A DNA stretch of 64,000 nt from Ascoidea asiatica JCM 7603 (taxonomy: Eukaryota; Fungi; Ascomycota): contig BCKQ01000006.1 of the NCBI GenBank assembly GCA_001600695.1, positions 70,782 to 134,781 on the forward strand, given 5' to 3'. The notes under the pieces are model-generated. The model was not told the origin of the DNA. It worked only from the letters and a program-made list of their open reading frames with translations, and made no database searches. The translations under genes and the position numbers were made by a program. The stretch's first letter is position 1, and every line of letters begins with the position of its first letter. Positions 27,189-56,524 of this stretch are shown here, piece after piece.

Positions 27189-29332
27189 TCAGTAGCAAAT
27201 AATTTTATTTTCTTCGTAATCATCAATTCTTATTTTAGTCTTGAATTCATCAATTGAGCAAGATTTTGGAATATTTTCAATATAAAAATTAACTGTATTT
27301 CGAATGCTAGCATCAGTCAAACCATACGGAAAATTATTCATTTTACGTTCATTAAATTCAACAAAGCCTAAATGTTTTAAATTTATAATCATTTTGAAAT
27401 TTAAATCCTTTATAGTGATTATTGGGTTATTACATAAATTTAAATGCCAAATATTTTTTAAATTATTTAAATTTTCAATTTTTTTAATATTATTACTTGA
27501 TAAATTTAATAATTCAAGATTTATTAAGAAATTTAATTGATTTGAAATTTGATTTATTTTATTATTTGAAAAAGATAGATTTTTTAATAGTTTGTTATTA
27601 TTAAGATTTTCAATTTCAATGATATTATTATTTGATAAATTTAACAGTGTCAATTTAGTTAAATTATTCAAATTTTCGACCATTGAAATATTATTATTTG
27701 ATAAATTTAATTTTTTTAAATTTATTAATTGATTTAAATTTTGAATTTTTGAAATATTATTATTTAATAAGTTTAGTTCAATCAAATTTTTAAAATATTT
27801 AAAACAATTTTTTTCAATATTTTTAATTTTATTATTTGATAAAAATAACTTTTTAAGTTTTGGGAAATTGATAAAATTGATAATTTCATTGATTTTATTA
27901 TTTGATAAATCTAATTCAATTAGATTTAATAAATTATTTAAATTTCTTAAAATTGATATATTATTATTAGATAAATTTAGATAAATCAAATTATTTAATT
28001 TTGAAAAATCTATTGAAATTTCATTAATAAAATTTTTAGATAAATCAATTTCTTTTAATTTTTTTAAATTTTTAAAATTATTAAACTCATTAATAAAATT
28101 GCTTGATAAATTTAGTTTTCTTAAATTGATTAAGTTATTGAGATTATTTAAATTACTGATTTTATTATTAGATAAATTTAACACCTTTAGGAAGATTAAA
28201 TTATTGAAATAATTAGGAATGAAATTGATTTGATTATTATTTGCGATTAAAATTTCAATATTTTTTAAAGGAACTTTTTCAAATCCGTAGAATTGATTGA
28301 ATTGAGAATTTGATTGAAATTCTAAAGTTGAAATTTTATTGAAATTTATTTTTAAAATTTTCAAAGAAGAATTATTTTTATTTAAGAAACTTAAATTTTT
28401 TAGATTATTTGAAGATAATTTTAGAAAAGTAATTTTTTTTGAAAATTTCAAAAAATTAGAATTAATTGAATCAATTGAAGAATTATTTAGAATTAATTTA
28501 TTCAAATTTAATAATTTTAAAGAATTATTTAACTGAATGAGATTTGAATTGTAAGATAAGTTTAAGATTTTTAGATTTGAATTTGATTTTGAATTCAAAA
28601 TTAATGGAATTTTATTAAAATTATTTGATTGTAAATTTAATTTATATAAATTTTTTAAATTAGATAAGAAAATTAAATTTGAAGAATTTGATAAATTACA
28701 ATTTGATAAATTTAAATTTTTTAAATTTTTAAAATTTAAAAATAAGTTAATTTCTAAGTTTGAATTAAATATATTTAAATTTGATAAATTTAAGTTACAT
28801 AAACTAGTTGAATTTAAATTTTTTAAAGAAAGTTTGAAATTATAGTTATTATAGAATTATCTGAATTTATTAAATCATTTGAAAATAATAATAATTGAAA
28901 AGATTTAATATTTTTTGAAGATTTAATTAAAAATAATAAATTTTTAAAATAATTTTGTAATTGATTATAATTATAATGAGAATTAAAGTTTAGATTAAAG
29001 TTATTTAAATCGAATTTGAAATTATTTGTACAAAAAAGTAAAAAATTATTAGAATGATTAATTTTAAGTTGATAATTGATAAAAGAATTTAAATTTTTAT
29101 AATTTAAATAAATTTTGAAGTTTTTATTATTATTATAATTTGAATTATAGATTGAATTATTGATTGAATTTAAAGAATATTTAAAATAAATTGAATTAAA
29201 TAATTTTTTATTTGATAAATATTTTAAATTATAATTATTTGATAATGTAAATAATAAAATAATATCATTTGATAAATTATCTAAAATTTTTTTAATTATA
29301 AAAATTGGTAAATTATTAAAATAATTAAACAT
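27189..29332 (-). pseudogene. F-box-like / SDS22-type LRR gene interrupted by a single frameshift at about 28823-28856 (pseudogene or sequencing error)
   Basis: The N-terminal ORF begins MFNYFNNLPIFIIKKILDNL (F-box-like). The LRR frame is open from 28856 to 27189 with many LxxLNLSxNxI repeats and overlaps the first ORF in the -1 frame. Confidence 0.75.
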
Positions 29333-35101: not shown

Positions 35102-35839
35102 TTATTTATATTGAACTGGAGGAATTGGAGCAGAATTTTGAGTTCTTGGATATCCTTCAACATCATAAAATTGATCATTTGTACCAGTGGTAGTAGTATG
35201 TTGAGCATTATGAGATGCAGGATATTGCCTATTTGTAGTTGTATAAGCAGCATTATTATCATTTTGTTGATAAGTTTCACTTGTTGTAGGATATGAACCA
35301 CTTGATTTTGTTGAATGACCTTGATTTTGATTTGGATAAGTTGAACCTGAATTTCCATATCTAGAAGTATTATTATTATTAAGATTATTATTACCATAAG
35401 TATTTGAAACTCCAGATGTATTTCTATTTGGATTTAAAGTTGAATTTGGATTTACATTTGCATTTGTGGTGGTATTTGCATTAGCATTTGAATTAACATA
35501 ACCAGTATTTGCAGTATTTGTATTATTTCCAAATTCATTTGAAGAAGTTGAAATATAATCATCTGGATGATTATAATTTCTTGATTCTTTTTGAGATTGT
35601 TTATAAGAAGGAGGTAAAATCCAAGTTTCATAACTCTTTAATGGAGTACCATTTCTTGCTTTCTTTCTTGCTGCAACACAACAACAAACTAATAATAATA
35701 CAAATAAACATGGTAAAATAAATAATAAAAAAAATAACCATCTTGCCCAATGCCATGTTGAACTTCCAGTACAAACATAATTACCATATGAATTATATCC
35801 ACAAGTTCTTCTTTTAACTAATTCTACAACAGATGGCAT
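35102..35839 (-). CDS. RCR-family (Rcr1/Rcr2-like) single-pass PY-motif protein, detached copy
   Basis: MP start, KR, Cys pair, WHWARW plus TM helix, and WILPPSYKQSQ. Confidence 0.8.
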   Translation of the reverse strand: MPSVVELVKRRTCGYNSYGNYVCTGSSTWHWARWLFFLLFILPCLFVLLLVCCCVAARKKARNGTPLKSYETWILPPSYKQSQKESRNYNHPDDYISTSSNEFGNNTNTANTGYVNSNANANTTTNANVNPNSTLNPNRNTSGVSNTYGNNNLNNNNTSRYGNSGSTYPNQNQGHSTKSSGSYPTTSETYQQNDNNAAYTTTNRQYPASHNAQHTTTTGTNDQFYDVEGYPRTQNSAPIPPVQYK

Positions 35840-45954: not shown

Positions 45955-46650
45955 ATGCCAGTTATAAAAATTTTTCAAAAGAAAATATCTTTAGAACAAA
46001 GAGATCAATCTAATAACATTACTACAAGCGCTATCAGCTACAACAGTAATTCGGACGATCAAAATGGAAGTGATATCAATAATTATAATTCAACTGGCAC
46101 TGATAATAGTTCAAATAATTATTCTAATCATACAGCAGAAACATTGCATTGGCATTCAGGAAAATGGTTATTGTTTTTAATACCTCTAATTTTTTTCTTT
46201 ATACTTATTTATATCATTTATAAAAATAAAAGCGAAAATTATAAAAGAACCAGATTACTTTTTGGTAATTTATCAAAAGATCAAGTAATAATCAAATTTA
46301 ATAATATTTTCAAAAGGCCTCCAACTTATTCTATCTCGGAAAAACAAAAGAATATGAGTACCAATAACAATAAAAAAAATAATGGTTTTAACTCAAATAT
46401 TCAATTACCTTTGTATACTCAAAGCCTAACAAATAATGATGCCGGATCTTATGATAATGATGGTTTCTTTCAACCAAGTGATTCATTTTTGAAAACAAAA
46501 TCAAAATCAAATTTAAATGCTCATAAGAGGGTTGCTGCAAAGGAAAATATAATCAAACAAAATTTTAAGTTTATACCTAAACTTTCTAATACTATTCTAT
46601 CTATACCTCCTTTGGCACATATCAAATCTAATAATAAAGAAACAAATTAA
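45955..46650 (+). CDS. RCR-family PY-motif membrane protein, array copy 1 (divergent)
   Basis: WHSGKW plus TM helix, PPTY, and LPLYT...NDAGSYDNDG. Confidence 0.8.
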   Translation: MPVIKIFQKKISLEQRDQSNNITTSAISYNSNSDDQNGSDINNYNSTGTDNSSNNYSNHTAETLHWHSGKWLLFLIPLIFFFILIYIIYKNKSENYKRTRLLFGNLSKDQVIIKFNNIFKRPPTYSISEKQKNMSTNNNKKNNGFNSNIQLPLYTQSLTNNDAGSYDNDGFFQPSDSFLKTKSKSNLNAHKRVAAKENIIKQNFKFIPKLSNTILSIPPLAHIKSNNKETN

Positions 46651-48417
46651 ATTTTGATATTATTCTATTAAAACTATAATTATTATCATGTTTTTTTTGA
46701 TTTTTCTCTTCCTTTTTTGCTTTTTGTTCCTTTTGATTAATGAATTGTTTTTTCTTAATTTTTTATTAAATCTTAAATTTTTACTCATTGTAGCGGCTTC
46801 GAAATGGTCAAGAACTTTCGAATATTAATTATTGTTTTTGAAGTTCAATTTTTTTCTATGGATATTTTGAACCACACACAAAGTATCCAAAACTAGGTTC
46901 TGATTGAATGAAAAATAATAGAGAAAAATAATTTTGAATTTCAAGATGAAAACAATTTAAACTTTATAAATCATTGCGGATTTTTTTTCTGGGGTTTTCC
47001 TAGGAAAAGACAGTGCTACGAATATTTGCAAAAAGTTTGTTTTTTTGAAATCTGAATCTCAAATTAGTTCGAATTAGTATCTAAATTGGTTTGAAGTTAG
47101 TTTGAACTAAGGATAAAGAAATAAGCATGCAAGTTGATATATAATGGCAGAAAGAAAGAATCAAATATATACAAGCAAAAGTATTGGCCCTTTAGTTCAA
47201 AAAATAAATTTCTTTTGTCTTTTAGTAGAATAAGTGTATCATATTTTTTTTTAAAAAGATTGAATTTATAAAATACACTAGCAATCATGACTTGTAAATT
47301 CATTTAATAGTTTATTAATAGTGAAAGCAGTAGAAGATCAACTCAAACTTCTAATCTTTCAAAAAATAAATATTGAAAGATATTATCTTATTGAATGTTA
47401 CCACAAATCCCTAGAATTCAGTCAATCAATTTGCTGATAAAAAGTTTGGTTAAGAAGGATTATATTTTTTTTGGCTCAAGTATTATCAAGGCCAAAAGCT
47501 TTATGCAGGGAAGTAAATAGGAAGAAGTAATGTTATGCATATACCTGCATTTAACACTTTTTTTAGGAAGATAATGCGAGAGAAAAAAAGCTCCCCTCAA
47601 ACCAGGAATATTCTTCAAACACAAAAAGGAAATCAAACACCCTCCAGATATGGATTTTGTTTTTTTTAGCACTTGTCTTAAGAGGCCCGTGGAAAGGAAC
47701 AAATTTCCCGCAACAAGGGAAACGGGTCGGGAGAGTCCACTTTTTTAATCTCCTTTCCAAATCATGTGTGTAATAAGAATATTGATTATTATTCTGGATT
47801 ATTGAAAATATAAGCAGCTCAGCCATTAAAAATTGTACTGTAAATACTTTTAAACAAACTAAAGTTTTGTTGTTTATTACTATACTAATAATCTAATACA
47901 TTACAGTGTTTGTTATTTACAATTTGATTTGATTTTGAAAAGCTCATCGATTTGTAAACAATTCCAAGTTACTTAGAAAAAAAAGCATTGGTAATAGATA
48001 ACAAAAACTATTTGTCGGTTTTAATTGGACTGAAATGAACTTTGAAGCAGTTTACTTTGTTTTGAAATGATAGATTGATGCTTTTTTTTTGCAGAATTGT
48101 TCTAGTAATTAGTCATGTCTGATGGAAATAGGCTGGATTTTTTTTCTCAATCAAAAATACAGCCAATGTTTATGATAATGGTATTCATTTTATCACATAT
48201 TTTATCTATTTGTAATAATTTACTTCATTTTTCTTACTTTCATTTAAGAGGAAAAAAAAAGTACCCCGATATAAGAACATTCACTTCTCAATAAATTAGA
48301 CGACTTTTTCCTTGTTTTAACTTGTGGTTTGTATAGTTGAAATACATTTTTTTAAAGAAATTGGAATTTTAATGATAAACTCTAGCAAGTTACTTAAATC
48401 AAAAATATTGAGTAATA

Positions 48418-49179
48418 ATGCCTTTCATTAAAGAATTAAAACTGAAAGTTAATGACTTCATTAACGATTCTTCCTTAATGCTATTAAGAAGGGAAGATGA
48501 TGATGATGCTGACTCAACAAGTGGCAAAATGAATTGGAAAGCAGGTAGATGGATATTATTTGTAATAATTGGTGTTATTTTTTTTATTTTTTTTATAACT
48601 TTGACTATTGTAAATGTTAGAAGGCATAGAAAGGGTATTAAACCAGTTGTTGGTACTGCATGGATAGTACCTCCATCTTATAGGCAAAGTCAAAGAGAAT
48701 ATAATCAACCCATTAATCAAGATTTTGTACCTAATGTTCCACAATATTCAACTCAAGTTAATGATTTTGATGCTGGCCATTTTGATAAACAAGGTGTATT
48801 TCACCGAAATAAAAATCTAATCAAAAATCAATTTGTTAATATTGATGAAATTAATGGATCGAGTAATACTAATTCATCTATAACAATGATCAATTCAACT
48901 GAAAATAATTCAAACATCAATACTACTACCAGCAATAATAATGATATACCAATGGATAATTTAACAATTAGTCACTCCGATAATAACTCTCACATTGCTT
49001 CAATTGAAGCAGACCAAAGAACAATTAATTCAAATGAGGATTCAACTGGTTTACTTCGAAATAATAATCCTAATGATAATCAGAATACACCAGTTGTACC
49101 AAATGAAGAAAGTAATTTAGCTTTACCCCAGTCTACTTTTCAACCCCCTAGCACACCTCCACTTATCCGTCATATATAA
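48418..49179 (+). CDS. RCR-family PY-motif membrane protein, array copy 2
   Basis: WKAGRW plus TM helix, GTAWIVPPSYRQSQ and VPQYS...DAGHFDKQGVFH. Confidence 0.9.
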   Translation: MPFIKELKLKVNDFINDSSLMLLRREDDDDADSTSGKMNWKAGRWILFVIIGVIFFIFFITLTIVNVRRHRKGIKPVVGTAWIVPPSYRQSQREYNQPINQDFVPNVPQYSTQVNDFDAGHFDKQGVFHRNKNLIKNQFVNIDEINGSSNTNSSITMINSTENNSNINTTTSNNNDIPMDNLTISHSDNNSHIASIEADQRTINSNEDSTGLLRNNNPNDNQNTPVVPNEESNLALPQSTFQPPSTPPLIRHI

Positions 49180-49894
49180 AATGAATAAATTCAAATAGAA
49201 TGTTTTAGTGCAATTTTATTTATATTTTTTGAAAATTTTCAGAAATGAAAAGCTCCTAAATAATTGAAAATAAAATTTTTTTTTCTTTTCTCTCTGCAAT
49301 TATATGATTTTTTTCATTTATTTTTAAGTAAAGTACTAGAACCAGCCCTGATCTTAAACTTTTCGATGGTTTATTCTTATATTTTTAATTTATTTTTCTT
49401 GATTAGGTAAAATTTTAGAATTTACCTATTATCAAATACTTTCTAGTCAATTTTTTTTTTTTTTGACCTTTGTCTCTCTTCAAATCCTTGTTTTTTTTTT
49501 TGATTTGATGTCTTTAAAAAGCTATGAGGAATTTAGATACACATTTGAAAGGCAATGTATTCTAAAAATAAAAAACCATGGATAAGTTGACCAATGAAAA
49601 TCTAAACAGGAGTATAAAGCTGAAAAAAAACTTTTTAATGGATCTCCAAATTGAAAGGTTACTGTAAATCAGTGATTCAAACTGTAGGTCATTTTAAAAT
49701 ATACTGAATATATATATCTGTAAAAATCCTTATTTATATTTTTATTTTTGAAGGCGGAATTTTTGTTAAACCTTCATAAATATGATTAAGTAACATTTAT
49801 TTCAAATCATTAATAATAAAATAATTTGATATTATTCTAAATTAAACCCTAAGTTAAAAAAGTTAAATAAAATAGGCATTTTATTCTCTTGAAA

Positions 49895-50602
49895 ATGCCA
49901 AGTTTAGTCGAACTATTAATCAAAGAAAGATACAAGGAAATAGAATTGAATTTGAATGAAAATAAAGTCACATTAATTAAAAGAGTACTTAAAGCAAAAA
50001 TAAGCAGTACTGCAACATATGCTTGTATTACGGCCAGTATAATAGTTGCGATTGGACTTTTAGTTTCATTATGTTTTGCTAATGAAGACGATAATAGTAA
50101 GAAAAATAAAAAAAAAGAAGGGTCTTATAATAATACAAATAATCAAAATTTAAGTCCCGAAACATCTCAAGACCAGATTTTAAGTCCCGAACCATCTCAA
50201 GACCAAAATAGAGTTAATTCTAATTATCAAAATGTTGCCCCAGATATTACAATGACTCCAAGTTTAAGTGAACATTCCAATTTAAATTCTAACTCAAAAG
50301 AAGTATCAGTAAAAATAGAAACTCATAAACAACCAGAAAAAGCTTATTTGAAACCAATTGAAACTCCAGAAGAAATTACAACTACATCTAAAGTTGCAGA
50401 AAGTAAAACATATTTGAATATTGAGTTAAATTCAAGAACAAATTTAAGTGTGAGTAATTCTACAAATTCAAGTTTAAGAAGTCCAGAAGCAGACTACAAT
50501 AATAGAGATAGTCAATATACTATAAGGGGAGTTAATAGTTTAAGAGATGATAGTTGTGCGAATATATCTTCCCCACCACCAGTCTATATGGAAAGCATAT
50601 AG
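49895..50602 (+). CDS. Highly divergent single-pass PY-motif protein, probably RCR-derived (array copy 3)
   Basis: MPSLVELL start resembles MPSVVELV of the 35839 copy. It has KR, one TM helix and a C-terminal PPPVY, but the core RCR motifs are lost. Confidence 0.6.
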   Translation: MPSLVELLIKERYKEIELNLNENKVTLIKRVLKAKISSTATYACITASIIVAIGLLVSLCFANEDDNSKKNKKKEGSYNNTNNQNLSPETSQDQILSPEPSQDQNRVNSNYQNVAPDITMTPSLSEHSNLNSNSKEVSVKIETHKQPEKAYLKPIETPEEITTTSKVAESKTYLNIELNSRTNLSVSNSTNSSLRSPEADYNNRDSQYTIRGVNSLRDDSCANISSPPPVYMESI

Positions 50603-51474
50603 CAAAGAAAATTTCCTAGATAATACATACAATATGTCCTATTAGATATTTTATATTTTTCTCTGTGGAAATTGAAGATTATAAATTATAAATTTTAAAG
50701 TTTAGCTTCATTCTCTTATGCTTTAGTACACACCAAGGAACTTTTTTTAAGGACCCTAAACAAAACGTCACCTAATGATACTGCGCCAACTTAAGAGTAT
50801 GTTCTTGAAAAAGGTGGCGCAGCATCCTTAAAAATATGAAACCTATCACGTGGAATATTATACCAAATTGCTTACCCTGCTCTTTGTTGTATTTTTTGAG
50901 CCATTCTTTTGCACCCGCAGCCGGATGAGCCGCAATAGCCGAAAAAATAAATCCGGGGTTAATTCGGAAGGGGCTCGGAAGTCAATATTTTCGAGATTGC
51001 TCCAGTTCTTGCGAGCTTGCTAAGAGAAGTGCTCTGATAACCTTACTGAGGAAGTCTCCAAAGGAAGAGAAAAGAAAAAAAGGTTCATGACATCAAATAT
51101 ACTTCTTCGCAAAGGATAGAACTAGAAGCCAAGGTTTTTTTACTATTGATTCAATTGCAATATTTGCATGCTTATCAAGCACTTAAACTCAAAATCAAAG
51201 TGAAATGATTTCAAGGAATAGATTTTAATTTTTTTTTTATTTAGCTTGATTGTTTTTAATTCTTTATAACTGTTTTTTATAGATATTTGAAATTACAATT
51301 CTGACTTTTTAATTTCATATTTTTGATCATTTAATATAATTATTATACTATATAAAAGGATCATAGACCTACTTTAGAAAAACAGAGAAACCAAAAACTA
51401 TAATACCCTTCAATACTGTTTCACTAAGACAAATATTATAAATTTTATTAATAATATCGACAAATTAAATTACA

Positions 51475-52017
51475 ATGCCAATAATAAATCATCATCATTT
51501 AGATAGACGCTCAATTAACTATTTAGATAAAAGAGCAAATGAGAATTCGAATTGTATTGGATGGAATTGTGCAACTGCAAACACTTGGAATTGGGCAAAA
51601 TGGATTCTACTCTCTTTTGTTATAGTTTTTGTATTAATTATAATACTTGCAATTTTTAGAATTAATAGAAAAAGATCAAAAAATGGGGATAAATTAATCC
51701 TAGGCACTTCATGGTTAATGCCACCTTCATATATGCAATCACAACAACAGTATAATCAACCAATAGAACATATAGGTAACAGTAATGTTGTTCCTGAATA
51801 TACTAAAGATGTTAATATGAATGATGCTGGATTTTATGATAATGATGGAAAATTTCATCCAAATGATAATTGTAATCATATTGAATATTTATCTGATAAT
51901 TTAAATGATTCCATTAATAATGACAATACCCATATTGATGATAATAATAATACTAATAATAATAATGAACATTACGAAAGACCAAATTATCCCCCTCCAG
52001 TTCATCTAATACAATAA
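51475..52017 (+). CDS. RCR-family PY-motif membrane protein, array copy 4
   Basis: WNWAKW plus TM helix, GTSWLMPPSYMQSQ and VPEYT...NDAGFYDNDGKFHPN. Confidence 0.92.
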   Translation: MPIINHHHLDRRSINYLDKRANENSNCIGWNCATANTWNWAKWILLSFVIVFVLIIILAIFRINRKRSKNGDKLILGTSWLMPPSYMQSQQQYNQPIEHIGNSNVVPEYTKDVNMNDAGFYDNDGKFHPNDNCNHIEYLSDNLNDSINNDNTHIDDNNNTNNNNEHYERPNYPPPVHLIQ

Positions 52018-52833
52018 AAGATTCTTACAATTCCAGAATTTATTCATTCTACTATTTTATATTATAATTACAAATTACTTTCTTCATCTTTTTTTATTTT
52101 TCTTTTTTATTCTTTCTCTGTTTTCTGGTTTGCTTCTTTGTTGTCTATTTTTTTTCAGCTTACTTGTTCTCTTTATCTGCCGGTTGTTATATAGTTGAAT
52201 ATTTATTCTTATTCTTGCATCTTAAGAGGAAGATTGAGATTATTAAACTCCTGAACAATTATTGTTCGTGAATTTTAAATAAATAGATAATAATAAATAC
52301 ATAATCAATAATCCATAATCAATTATGACCAAATAATGTGAATGTCTGTAGTTTTAGATATTTCCGGTGTTATAATTTTCCTCTTTAGGCAATAATTATC
52401 AGCCTCGACGGTTCGATTTATCAACATCTCGACCGGATATACCGCCATTCTGACAATAAGCAAATAATGGCTGAGAATTATTCAAAGTGACAACAGAAAC
52501 CCTCAAAACGAATATTGCATATCAGTAATTGAATCAGTAATTGAATTTGTAATTGAATCTTTAACTCAACTTTTAAGTATAGATAAATTGAAATATAATT
52601 AAAAAGATAATCAAGTCAGCAACTGAATTATTAATTCAATTATGATCAGTTCAGGAATCATACATACTTAAATCAAAATACTGTGTGTCTTAATTTTACT
52701 TCAAGGTTACGATTGCTATTTCATTTATAAAATTGTAATTTTTTATATTTAACATACTGTATATGTTTGTTTATATTTAAATTTTATTCATCACTTAAAA
52801 ACTTATTAATTAGATAAATAAAAAAAAATAAAA

Positions 52834-53646
52834 ATGCCTGTGATATTAAATAAAAGCTTTTTGAACTCAGATCAGTTGTCAGAATTATTGAATAAAACTC
52901 CTACAATATCAAGTAAATTGAATTTATCTTTATCAAAAAGAGATGACAACGAGTGCTATAGTTGGAGTTGTGGATCATCAAATAGTTGGGAATGGGCAAG
53001 ATGGATTTTATTTGTTTTATTTGGTGTCTTTATATTTTCTTTATTTCTAACTACAAGAAGTATCAATAGAAAAAGAGGTAGAAACGGTGTAGCCCCAATA
53101 GTTGGTACTGCTTGGATTACTCCACCTTCTTATTATCAATCCCAACAACAATATAATCAACCACCTGGAGGCACTGGTGCTGCTCCAAATGAAGCTCCAG
53201 TTCCTCAATATACCGCTGATGTTAATCAAAATGATGCTGGCTATTATGATAATACTGGTACTTTTCATCCAAATGATAATCATCAAAAACCTTCTCCATT
53301 AAATACTAATTCAACTACTAGAGAACAAAATAATACTTCCACTTCTTCAGATAATCCTTTCGAAGGTGTCCCAGCTCCTCAAGCGGCTGCTGTTAATAAC
53401 AGTCCTAACAATGCTGCTCATTATGATGATGACCAGTTTAGAAGAGATTTTACAAACTATTATGGTACAAATGATAATCAAAATAATGCAAATAATAATA
53501 TTGAATTAAACACATTTCAAAGACCTGAAGGTCCACCCCCTTCCAATGTAGTATCTTCAAATGAAAATGAAAATACAAGCTCAGATTCTAATACTTATCA
53601 AAGACCTCCAGGATCTCCTCCTCCTCCTTCTCATCTTAGAAGCTAA
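52834..53646 (+). CDS. RCR-family PY-motif membrane protein, array copy 5 (most canonical)
   Basis: WEWARW plus TM helix, GTAWITPPSYYQSQ, VPQYT...NDAGYYDNTGTFHPN and YQRPPGSPP. Confidence 0.93.
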   Translation: MPVILNKSFLNSDQLSELLNKTPTISSKLNLSLSKRDDNECYSWSCGSSNSWEWARWILFVLFGVFIFSLFLTTRSINRKRGRNGVAPIVGTAWITPPSYYQSQQQYNQPPGGTGAAPNEAPVPQYTADVNQNDAGYYDNTGTFHPNDNHQKPSPLNTNSTTREQNNTSTSSDNPFEGVPAPQAAAVNNSPNNAAHYDDDQFRRDFTNYYGTNDNQNNANNNIELNTFQRPEGPPPSNVVSSNENENTSSDSNTYQRPPGSPPPPSHLRS

Positions 53647-54198
53647 AGTCTTATTTCTTTACCTTCTTATAACCAATCTCAATTTCAATACAATATTCAA
53701 AATTCAATCTTTAGTATTCCAACTGAAGTTTCATTCATAAATTTAATTTTAAATTCAATTGATGGTCTTATTACTGGCTCTATTACTATTTTTAATAGAA
53801 TTTTTAACCAAAGCATTAATAGACAATCTGAAAATTTACCAGACTATACTGAAGATTTAAATCAAAATGATTTAGGTTATTATGATGATTTTGGTAGTTA
53901 TCATGAAAATGATAATAATTTAATTAATCAAAAAAACGAGTTATTATCATTTCTTAAAAAATTTTTATTATCTCAATATCATTATATATATTTTTTATAT
54001 TCTAATTTTGTATCAAATTTCCTATCTTTAAATTTAAACACAATTATTACTATCGTTAATATTTCTTTATCATTAATTATGTTATTCTTGCTTTGTTTTC
54101 TACTTCTTAATATACTATTCTTTTTTTTTTCAATGGATAATTTATTATTTTTTTTTTGTTTATTACTTGCAAGTGCAAGATTTTTGCTGTTAATATAA
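53647..54198 (+). other. In-frame post-stop RCR-like module of 183 codons (readthrough extension or 5'-truncated copy)
   Basis: The same frame as 52834-53646 reads SLISLPSYNQSQFQYN...LPDYTEDLNQNDLGYYDDFGSYHEND...hydrophobic tail, ending at TAA 54196-54198. There is no ATG before 54079. Confidence 0.8.
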
Positions 54199-54307
54199 AT
54201 TAATTATTATTACTAACTCTATTTTATTATGAATTTATTAAAAGCTTTTCTTTTATGTAAATTGGATAAGTTTTTTATGAAAAAAAAAAAAAAAATTCAT
54301 TACGTTA

Positions 54308-56524
54308 TCATACATTATCTATGCTGTCGTTTTTAAAGTCTTCCTTTGAAATACTTTTTTCGTCATCATTATTTTGATTACCAGTTTTATTTTTCTTGAT
54401 TTCATTGAAAATATTTTGACTATTAACAAGAATTAACTTTTTTTTACCTTTTTTATTTTTCTTAAATTGTTTTTTCTTATCTTTTAATTCTTTTTTTAAT
54501 TGACTTGACTTTAAAATTTCTTCAAATTCATCAATTTCACTATCATCTTCTTTATTAACTATTTCACTAGATTTATTCTGAATTAATTTTGTACCCCATA
54601 TTGTTTTTCTTTCAACCGAATTATTTGAATTGTTCCCATTATTATTATTATTATTATTTAAACTATTATCAGAACTAATTTCAGAATTTATTAGATTAAT
54701 ATTTGATCCATGATTACTAATTAAAGCTGGAAAATGTGTTTCATCATTAATTTCAATGATTTCCCTATTTAAGTTATTAACATAATCGAAATATTCATCA
54801 TTTTCTTTTAAATAAAATTCTTTTGCCTTTATTTCCAAATTTTTCAAAGCATTATTTTTATTTTTTTCTTCTTTTTTAAATTTTTCAGTATTTCTCTTCG
54901 ATCTTAAAAATATTTCATTCTTAAAACTTTCATAAATGTTTTTGTTAATTTGAATATAACCTTCATTATTATTTGAATTATTATTTGTATTATCATTATT
55001 ACTATTAGTATTATCATTTTTGTTATTTGAATGAGAATAATGAAATTTCCAATTAATATCAATAAAAGCCAATTCAGTTCCAATTGGAGAATGCCCTAAG
55101 AATTTCAAATTTTTGATAACATTTGTTGAATTTAAATAAATACCATAATTTATATTCTCTACTTTTACTTTAATTGAATTTGGAAAATTTGAATAATTAT
55201 GATAAATTGATTTTAAAATTTTAATATCTAAATTTGATAATAAATAAACAATACTTGAACTAAAAGAGGTTTGATAATAAAATTTTGCTAATGATTCATC
55301 AATTTGATTAAATTTTTGTTGATTTGAAATATTATTAATATTTAAACTATTTAATGAATTTGGTAATAAATTTTCAGTAATTTGATTTTTATTTGAATAA
55401 TTTTTTTCAATTAATTTAATATGTGTATTTATTTGATTTAAAGCTTTATTAACATATATTAAAGAATCATTATTATTATCATTATCATTATAATTATATA
55501 ATAGTTTATCATTATTATATTGATCTAAAATACATTTTTTTTCATTATAATATTGATTTAAAATAAATTTATTATTTCCTTTCATAATTCTAACATAAGG
55601 ATAAATATTATTATCTAAATCAATTGAATTTGGTTGAGAACACCAAGGAATTTTATCTAAATTATTCAATACTTGAGGTGAATCAATTAAAGATAAAGGT
55701 AATGAATAATTTAAATCATTTGGTTTAATTAATAATTTAAATATTATATCTTGATTTTTTTTAGGTATATCAAATCTTTCATCAAAAGATTTATCTAAAT
55801 AAACAGGTAATATTGAATCTAAATTAATTGATTCATGACAAATTGGACAATCTTTTTTAATTTTATTTTTTGATAAATTTGGAGAATCTAAATATCTTAA
55901 AAGACAAGTTAAACAAAATAAATGACCACAATTTATAATTCTTGGAGAAATTAAATCAATTTCTAAACAAATTGGACAAATATTACCTTTTTTAGTAATG
56001 ACTCTTAAAATATTACTTTTATCAATTGGAATATTTGGATCTAAGATTTGATTTGAATAATCACCTTTATAACTTACAATAAATTTACAAATTAAATTTA
56101 TATAAGATTCACCAGTTAAATTATTATGAAAAGAATTTATATTTTTAGTTGAACGATTATTTGATTTATATGAATTATGTGAGTTATAAGAATTATGTGA
56201 GTTATGTGAATTATGGGGATGATAGTAATAAAAATCATCATTATTATCATCTAAAAGATCAATTTTTTTATATTTTTGAACTTTTTTTTTCTCTTTGATA
56301 TTTTTACTAATTTCTGTAGAAGTTTCATCAATATTTATAATTCTTTTTTGATTTTTTCTTTTATTGAGTAATAAGTTCTCTTTTTTATTTTTTTTAAAAT
56401 TAGTTGAATTCATTTTTTCATTCAATTTCAAAGATGATTTATATTTTGAAAAATTATTAGTAGAAGATAAAGATGAATTTGAAGATAGTGACTGATTTAT
56501 AATTTGGTCCTTTTTTGAACTCAT
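54308..56524 (-). CDS. MAG2: RING-finger E3 ligase Mag2/RNF10 type
   Basis: C3HC4 RING (CPICLE...CGHLFCLTCL...CPIC) preceded by FIV...DY...DPN, and followed by FYYQT, LSNLDIKIL and KTIWGT. Confidence 0.85.
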   Translation of the reverse strand: MSSKKDQIINQSLSSNSSLSSTNNFSKYKSSLKLNEKMNSTNFKKNKKENLLLNKRKNQKRIINIDETSTEISKNIKEKKKVQKYKKIDLLDDNNDDFYYYHPHNSHNSHNSYNSHNSYKSNNRSTKNINSFHNNLTGESYINLICKFIVSYKGDYSNQILDPNIPIDKSNILRVITKKGNICPICLEIDLISPRIINCGHLFCLTCLLRYLDSPNLSKNKIKKDCPICHESINLDSILPVYLDKSFDERFDIPKKNQDIIFKLLIKPNDLNYSLPLSLIDSPQVLNNLDKIPWCSQPNSIDLDNNIYPYVRIMKGNNKFILNQYYNEKKCILDQYNNDKLLYNYNDNDNNNDSLIYVNKALNQINTHIKLIEKNYSNKNQITENLLPNSLNSLNINNISNQQKFNQIDESLAKFYYQTSFSSSIVYLLSNLDIKILKSIYHNYSNFPNSIKVKVENINYGIYLNSTNVIKNLKFLGHSPIGTELAFIDINWKFHYSHSNNKNDNTNSNNDNTNNNSNNNEGYIQINKNIYESFKNEIFLRSKRNTEKFKKEEKNKNNALKNLEIKAKEFYLKENDEYFDYVNNLNREIIEINDETHFPALISNHGSNINLINSEISSDNSLNNNNNNNGNNSNNSVERKTIWGTKLIQNKSSEIVNKEDDSEIDEFEEILKSSQLKKELKDKKKQFKKNKKGKKKLILVNSQNIFNEIKKNKTGNQNNDDEKSISKEDFKNDSIDNV

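Follow-up and report, generated by a model that had tools for sequence, protein, structure and literature searches.

RCR genes and the open frame behind copy 5

The DNA analysed here, referred to as the window, is a 64,000-nucleotide stretch of the genome of Ascoidea asiatica JCM 7603, an AT-rich budding yeast whose assembly comprises 20.3 Mb in 71 contigs. Five to six genes of the RCR type (Pfam PF12273) form a tandem array on the + strand at 45955-53646, and one inverted copy lies outside this array at 35102-35839. RCR proteins, represented in Saccharomyces cerevisiae by Rcr1 and Rcr2, are single-pass membrane adaptors of the Rsp5 ubiquitin ligase. Copies 0, 1 and 3 of the array are strongly remodelled, and DNA identity among the paralogues does not exceed 77%, over 75 nt. 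Copy 5 is the most canonical member by its Pfam score (Table 1); hydropathy places its membrane helix at residues 53-78, and its PPSY and VPQY motifs are encoded at 53122-33 and 53200-11.

Copy 5 ends as the first-pass annotation had read it, with ...PPPPSHLRS-TAA at the usual C-terminus of the family (copies 4 and 2 end in PPVHLIQ and PPLIRHI before their stops). Because the distance to the terminal PP motif is the same as in copies 2 and 4, this TAA is the native stop. Directly behind it, with no spacer, the frame of copy 5 runs on without a stop for 183 codons, again as noticed beforehand. The 3′ end of the MAG2-like gene lies 110 nt from the end of this open frame.

Table 1 Features of the copy 5 region, in window positions
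Feature	Position	Strand	Description and basis
RCR copy 5	52834-53646	+	Intact gene, 270 aa; ORF list; Pfam PF12273, 96 bits, E 3e-27
TAA stop of copy 5	53644-53646	+	Context AGC-TAA-AGT
RCR-derived part	53647-53931	+	Putative former coding (or coding) fragment of a sixth paralogue; BLASTP, MAFFT family alignment, codon usage, P(no stop) 2.7e-4
T-rich tail	53932-54195	+	53% T, 16% GC; hydrophobic reading; open in frame 0 only
First TATATA-type element after the copy 5 stop	53983-53992	+	TATATATA; 336 nt downstream, inside the open frame; S. cerevisiae consensus
Closing TAA of the 183-codon frame	54196-54198	+	Frame-0 reading, stop counts
MAG2-like RING gene	54308-56524	-	Convergent; ORF list; best match Ascoidea rubescens MAG2, 47% identity

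No RCR gene was found within 10 kb of the A. rubescens MAG2 locus, and the contigs that carry RCR in other yeasts show no synteny with the present locus. In three other yeasts, a single RCR gene stands at most 6 kb from a gene of the RSN1/PHM7 family and is directly adjacent to it in two of them (L033 and L036); no such neighbour was seen beside the RCR array in the 64-kb window. With the RSN1/PHM7 neighbour not seen here and no RCR gene beside MAG2 in A. rubescens, the array gives the impression of having expanded within this lineage at a new site.

Two further open reading frames were recorded. The first, of 1219 aa (L035 47-3706, - strand; G000:C1:1461047-1464706), starts with an RCR-like membrane helix and a KGTGW linker and carries a YTGYYD-like motif near its C-terminus; its Pfam RCR score of 29.7 bits is barely above the cut-off, and it appears to encode a giant RCR-related protein of low complexity. 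The second is a leucine-rich-repeat gene (window 27189-29332, - strand), split into an ATG-started ORF of 169 aa (28823-29332) and a stretch of 555 open codons in another frame (27189-28856). The two overlap by ~34 nt, and an intron, a frameshift or an indel in the assembly could account for the split.

A partial RCR module follows the stop codon

The first-pass annotation had taken the stretch behind the copy 5 stop for a second RCR module, and BLASTP identifies it as a genuine one, with E values of 4e-11, 8e-10 and 6e-7 to copies 5, 4 and 2. The extension begins with I-S-L-P-S-Y (LPSY at 53659-70), followed by QSQ-QYN, and both elements are family-like. An insertion follows within 53695-53835, which measures 33 aa in the MAFFT family alignment (~35 aa in the earlier reading) and is present in 0 of 36 relatives. 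The core, LPDY...DLGYYD...YHEND at 53836-53916, matches copy 5 at 63% of 27 aa (E 4e-11). The fragment thereby matches the conserved cytosolic core of the family, xPxY[TS]...DxG[YF][YF]D...GxFHxN, with the near-invariant columns all kept or conservatively changed, and both of its PY-like motifs read LPxY.

The fragment is devoid of an N-terminus, a membrane helix, the GTxW tryptophan and the terminal PP motif. No hydrophobic segment precedes its motifs and it contains no Trp, so that the N-terminal helix and GTxW-xPPSY linker of PF12273 are not found; the Pfam model scores it at 13.4 bits (E 0.13, model positions 60-90 only), under the gathering cut-off of 27.8 bits. The usual C-terminal region of the family, 48-120 residues long and ending in the PP motif, is likewise absent from the extension. 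What follows the core is the long hydrophobic tail that had been described earlier, rich in Leu and Phe, with hydrophobic segments at extension residues 126-183. The first in-frame ATG is codon 144, in agreement with the earlier observation that none precedes the conserved motifs. In being homologous to a functional paralogue, truncated and devoid of a start of its own, the fragment resembles a pseudogene. The extension contains no internal repeats of note, the region has no match in Rfam, and a search of the window for other RCR relics with the core motif, itself noisy, found none.

The end of copy 5 and the start of the extension are also spanned by an ATG-started ORF of 59 codons in frame +1 relative to copy 5 (window 53561-53740, + strand). 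It is probably due to chance, its Leu-rich hydrophobic product arising from a CCT (Pro) run read out of frame.

The frame is open beyond what composition allows

Over the extension, frame 0 contains 0 stops, the other + frames contain 10 and 25, and the - frames 14-32. Given the local composition, the probability of finding no stop is 8e-7 for the whole extension, 2.7e-4 for 53647-53931 and 3e-3 for the tail (53932-54195); empirically, 0.23% of noncoding 88-codon windows with the T/A content of the tail are open. For 70 ORFs of at least 200 aa, taken from 264 kb of this genome, the frame stays open past the stop for a median of 6 codons, and for at most 49 when copy 5 is set aside. The first-pass annotation had called the frame unusually long for such DNA, and it is indeed far longer than composition allows (P ~8e-7). 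A chance open frame is ruled out by this probability together with the stop counts in the other frames and the 70-gene comparison. Because the open frame so far exceeds composition, the extension was coding until recently or still is.

The caution raised earlier, that the T-rich tail is stop-poor anyway, is weakly true, but 4 and 5 stops interrupt the tail in the two remaining + frames, which rules out stop-poor composition as the full explanation at copy 5. Behind copy 4, the post-stop region at window 52018-52194 is open for 59 codons in two of the three + frames. Its openness is explained by composition, because the region is A-poor and T/C-rich and two frames are open, whereas only one is open at copy 5.

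The two parts of the extension are unlike in character

Coding character was assessed with a codon log-odds score trained on 55 long ORFs versus noncoding trinucleotides, in which genes have a mean of +0.29 (sd 0.16) and intergenic DNA has a mean of -0.41 (sd 0.29, 95th percentile +0.18). Per codon, the core scores +0.64, the segment with LPSY and the insertion (53647-53835) +0.15, and the insertion alone +0.19. All parts of 53647-~53931 thus lie in the range of gene codon usage and about at or above the intergenic 95th percentile, and this part looks like coding sequence.

The tail scores -0.19. This value fits within the intergenic distribution; it falls short of the 1st percentile of gene windows and is lower than any of 26 real hydrophobic gene windows (minimum +0.045). 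Its translation contains no Gly, Pro or Trp and consists of Leu and Phe to 47%; real membrane segments in the same genome contain ~10% Gly, 9% Ala and 7.5% Val. The T content of the tail, 0.53, is about that of ordinary 3′ flanks, which have 0.48 T over the first 100-150 nt after the stop. In these respects, the tail resembles the ordinary T-rich DNA of a 3′ flank or terminator and differs from sequence that codes for real membrane proteins. The T-rich zone normally comes directly after the stop; at copy 5 it is shifted by ~300 nt, to just past the core, and from this displacement a gene seems once to have ended near 53930-50. The TATATA-type element TATATATA is, by analogy with S. cerevisiae, a candidate 3′-end efficiency element.

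The tail is no more similar to the flanks downstream of other RCR copies than to unrelated 3′ flanks, so that homology between them is rejected; lenient blastn matches are an effect of AT-rich composition. Even as a 3′ flank, the tail is unexpectedly open (P ~0.002-0.003).

Age and relatives of the fragment

The fragment and copy 5 can be aligned over 42 codons, where their dS is ~0.6, similar to dS between intact copies, and the sixth paralogue is therefore old. The corresponding dN/dS is 0.48, with 0.34-0.60 for intact copies among themselves (42 codons only), and a rough three-point estimate of low power over the same 42 codons gives ~0.47 for the fragment branch. The probability that a neutral frame of this make-up stays open is 0.18 once divergence reaches 5% and 0.03 at 10%, indels not counted. 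Since 6.2% of point changes in the frame give a stop, a never-translated copy would still be open with P ~4e-8 at dS 0.5. Such a copy could not have stayed open; therefore, either the sixth gene was still complete in the recent past or selection acts on the frame at present. The 183 codons contain 0 nonsense or frameshift mutations, which, if the fragment is a relic, fits a young one only.

No homologue of the extension with comparable length (0.55-1.75 times the query) was found in a collection of 5.8 billion proteins. The closest relatives of copy 5 are at most 43% identical, and a metagenome scan returned only a relative with 33% identity.

A probable, recently truncated sixth paralogue

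We favour, with moderate confidence, the reading that the extension is a young untranslated relic, namely a recently truncated sixth RCR paralogue that would now lie in the 3′ UTR of copy 5. Originally, the complete paralogue, copy 6, would have been the next member of the tandem array behind copy 5. It may then have lost its first ~90 codons, which would have encoded the ectodomain, the membrane helix and GTxW, through a deletion of ~1.1-1.4 kb that also took the spacer between the genes and the 3′ flank of copy 5. The resulting junction would have put the PY-motif region of copy 6 against the base after the native TAA of copy 5, and a 1-in-3 chance would have brought it into frame. The first ~95 codons of the extension would accordingly be former coding sequence that has collected no stop yet, which would limit its neutral age to ~5-10% divergence, and the last ~88 codons would be ordinary T-rich 3′-flank DNA, open in this frame by an unusual coincidence. 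Ribosomes would halt at the copy 5 TAA, leaving the fragment in the 3′ UTR of that gene.

The confinement of the homology to the cytosolic family motifs, with no N-terminus, helix or terminal PP motif, is consistent with such a relic, as is the apparently lineage-specific and plastic nature of the array, seen in the remodelling of copies 0, 1 and 3 and in the A. rubescens MAG2 locus without RCR. The relic reading explains the missing N-terminus, helix and C-terminus, the absent start, the tight stop, the noncoding-like tail and the displaced terminator-like zone. The first-pass annotation had listed a recently 5′-deleted tandem copy, in frame by chance, as an alternative to readthrough; given the missing parts, the tight stop and the noncoding-like tail, this alternative fits better than readthrough.

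Several observations weigh against a relic. It needs a recent deletion, a junction 0-6 nt from the stop, the correct frame and a stop-free 88-codon tail (P ~0.002-0.003), all together, and it leaves the open tail unexplained. The fragment has undergone three large structural losses, yet no nonsense or frameshift mutation. Its core retains every family-critical residue, including DLGYYD, and both PY-like motifs are LPxY. Substitutions on its branch, with the low power of 42 codons, do not look neutral (dN/dS ~0.47). If the fragment is a relic, the locus illustrates ordinary birth-and-death turnover in a lineage-specific RCR array, in which a recent deletion is dated and copy 5 is now on a borrowed 3′ end.

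Possible readthrough of the copy 5 stop

The first-pass annotation had preferred a readthrough or recoding isoform, in which some ribosomes would decode the copy 5 UAA to give a 454-residue protein and selection would hold the frame open. Such a product would carry two extra LPxY motifs (four PY-type motifs in all), a sorting motif of the LxYYD type and a hydrophobic C-terminal tail. We regard this as unlikely, and as unlikely to a similar degree the variant in which the UAA is bypassed at a low rate or under certain conditions and a new hydrophobic anchor has been recruited from T-rich 3′-flank DNA. In favour of readthrough, the frame is open far beyond chance, tail included, the core motifs appear intact and PY-competent, and the extension abuts the stop with no spacer. 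T-rich intergenic DNA is moreover a known source of membrane-spanning segments for new coding sequence (PMC7005711). The openness of the tail favours readthrough only if the tail itself is functional, and its codon usage is noncoding-like.

The stop codon itself speaks against translation of the extension. Of the three stop codons, UAA is the one that S. cerevisiae reads through least; at +4, A and G are the two bases that permit readthrough least, and A is favourable to it at -2 and -1 (PMC8087045). By these rules, the copy 5 stop, a UAA with A at +4 and G/C at -2/-1, falls into the poorly leaky class; of the features of leaky stops (UGA or UAG, C at +4, CARYYA, A at -1/-2), none is present. 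The earlier caveat that the context, AGC-UAA-AGU-CUU, has no CARYYA-like motif and does not belong to the known leaky class is borne out, and TAAA is the commonest stop tetranucleotide among the genes of this genome (21 of 68). No stimulatory RNA structure was found in the 130 nt after the stop, whose fold of -11.6 kcal/mol (z -1.5) is matched by 14 of 200 shuffled sequences. Reassignment of TAA is ruled out, since long conserved ORFs contain no internal TAA and TAA closes 48 of 70 genes.

The TATATA element and the T-rich zone inside the frame further suggest that transcripts may end before 54196. The protein collection described above offers no extension homologue of comparable length in support of a longer isoform, and the only 'double RCR' protein found (P0001, see below) appears to be a gene model in which ~1 kb of predicted intron sequence links two tandem genes. 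The readthrough or recoding isoform thus finds no support in the stop context, RNA structure, splice paths or codon usage of the tail. Were the extension nevertheless translated, this would be a rare instance in fungi of readthrough past UAA into a domain-bearing stretch, and a live example of a new membrane anchor from T-rich noncoding DNA; with readthrough, a gene fusion and a de novo membrane segment would have been caught at birth behind a retained stop codon.

Splicing, separate expression and assembly

Introns in this genome have GTATGT or GTAAGT donors and TACTAAC-type branch sites. Examples are an RPL8-like gene with ATG/GTATGT...TACTAAC...TAG (L013 9640-9815, - strand) and a TFIIA gene with GTAAGT...AATTAAC...TAG (L011 9235-9325, - strand). 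Because introns carry these S. cerevisiae-like signals, several real genes show as long open frames with no ATG. At copy 5, as had been cautioned, no consensus donor that would skip the stop is present, and no branch site occurs at 53460-54040. A stop-skipping intron is ruled out, as the weak GT sites at 53548 and 53551 join out of frame and canonical donor and branch sites are lacking. A perfect TACTAAC occurs 13 nt past the closing TAA (window 54211-54217, + strand); with no upstream donor and no room for an exon before MAG2, it is probably there by chance.

Expression by another route, from an own transcript with a non-AUG start or through a non-canonical splice from the membrane-helix exon of copy 5, is very unlikely. 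Its product would be a PY-motif adaptor anchored by a C-terminal hydrophobic tail, with a topology like that of Bsd2. The retained open frame is compatible with it, the order of cytosolic PY motifs followed by hydrophobic segments (residues 126-183) would keep the membrane orientation of the motifs, and in many genes of this genome a short 5′ exon precedes a main exon that has no ATG of its own. Here, however, there is no ATG, and a preceding exon would have no space because the copy 5 coding sequence lies directly upstream. For such a splice, canonical donor, branch and acceptor sites are all missing, and the tail is unlike real membrane-protein coding sequence.

There is an even slimmer chance that the junction or stop is an assembly error, or a deletion that is heterozygous or private to the laboratory lineage, so that the natural genome would hold a complete sixth gene. 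Tandem arrays are prone to misassembly, but these paralogues are too diverged to collapse, as their DNA identity reaches no more than 77% over 75 nt. In the 20.3-Mb assembly the extension is present a single time and is not accompanied by an alternative haplotig, and the stop stands at the native C-terminal position of the family. Lastly, a partial tandem duplication of the copy 5 segment from PPSY to the stop, whose second copy was never translated, would yield exactly the single stop-against-PPSY junction seen here and segments of similar length (179 and 184 codons), but dS is ~0.6 even in the conserved motifs, the segments are unalignable elsewhere, and an untranslated copy so old would be open with P ~4e-8, so that this origin is effectively refuted unless the copy is translated.

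Comparison with known systems

The S. cerevisiae BSC genes and PDE2 are yeast ORF pairs parted by one in-frame stop, or readthrough genes. Like them, the locus presents two long ORFs in one frame with a single stop between. Unlike the documented leaky cases, in which UGA or UAG is followed by C at +4 or by CARYYA, it has UAA-A with neither motif nor structure (PMC8087045). The 'Protein RCR2' of Spathaspora sp. JA1 (P0001, NSGQ01000081.1) resembles the hypothetical long isoform in its length of 454 aa and in combining two RCR modules in one annotated product. It differs in that both modules are complete, each with a membrane helix, and its gene model occupies 2411 nt (L036 3001-5411) for 1365 coding nt; P0001 is likely a mis-annotated fusion of two tandem genes and not a readthrough product.

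Membrane-spanning segments can arise from T-rich noncoding DNA (PMC7005711, PMC10063215). The tail resembles such segments in being 3′-flank-like DNA whose in silico translation is hydrophobic and rich in Leu and Phe. LxYYD is the exomer sorting motif of S. cerevisiae Rcr1 (PMC7401822). In common with Rcr1 and Rcr2, the fragment keeps a PY motif (LPSY), the core xPxYT...DxGYYD...GxFHxN and, as DLGYYD, a version of the Rcr1 LxYYD motif. Unlike these proteins, it is without an ectodomain, membrane helix, GTxW, second sorting motif, PP motif and start codon, and it has the 33-aa insertion.

The fragment is also comparable to the gene relics and unitary pseudogene fragments of yeast tandem arrays under birth-and-death evolution: it is a truncated paralogue at the edge of an array, with no start codon or promoter. 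It differs from such relics in carrying no lesion in 183 codons and in lying exactly in frame, abutting the stop of the upstream gene.
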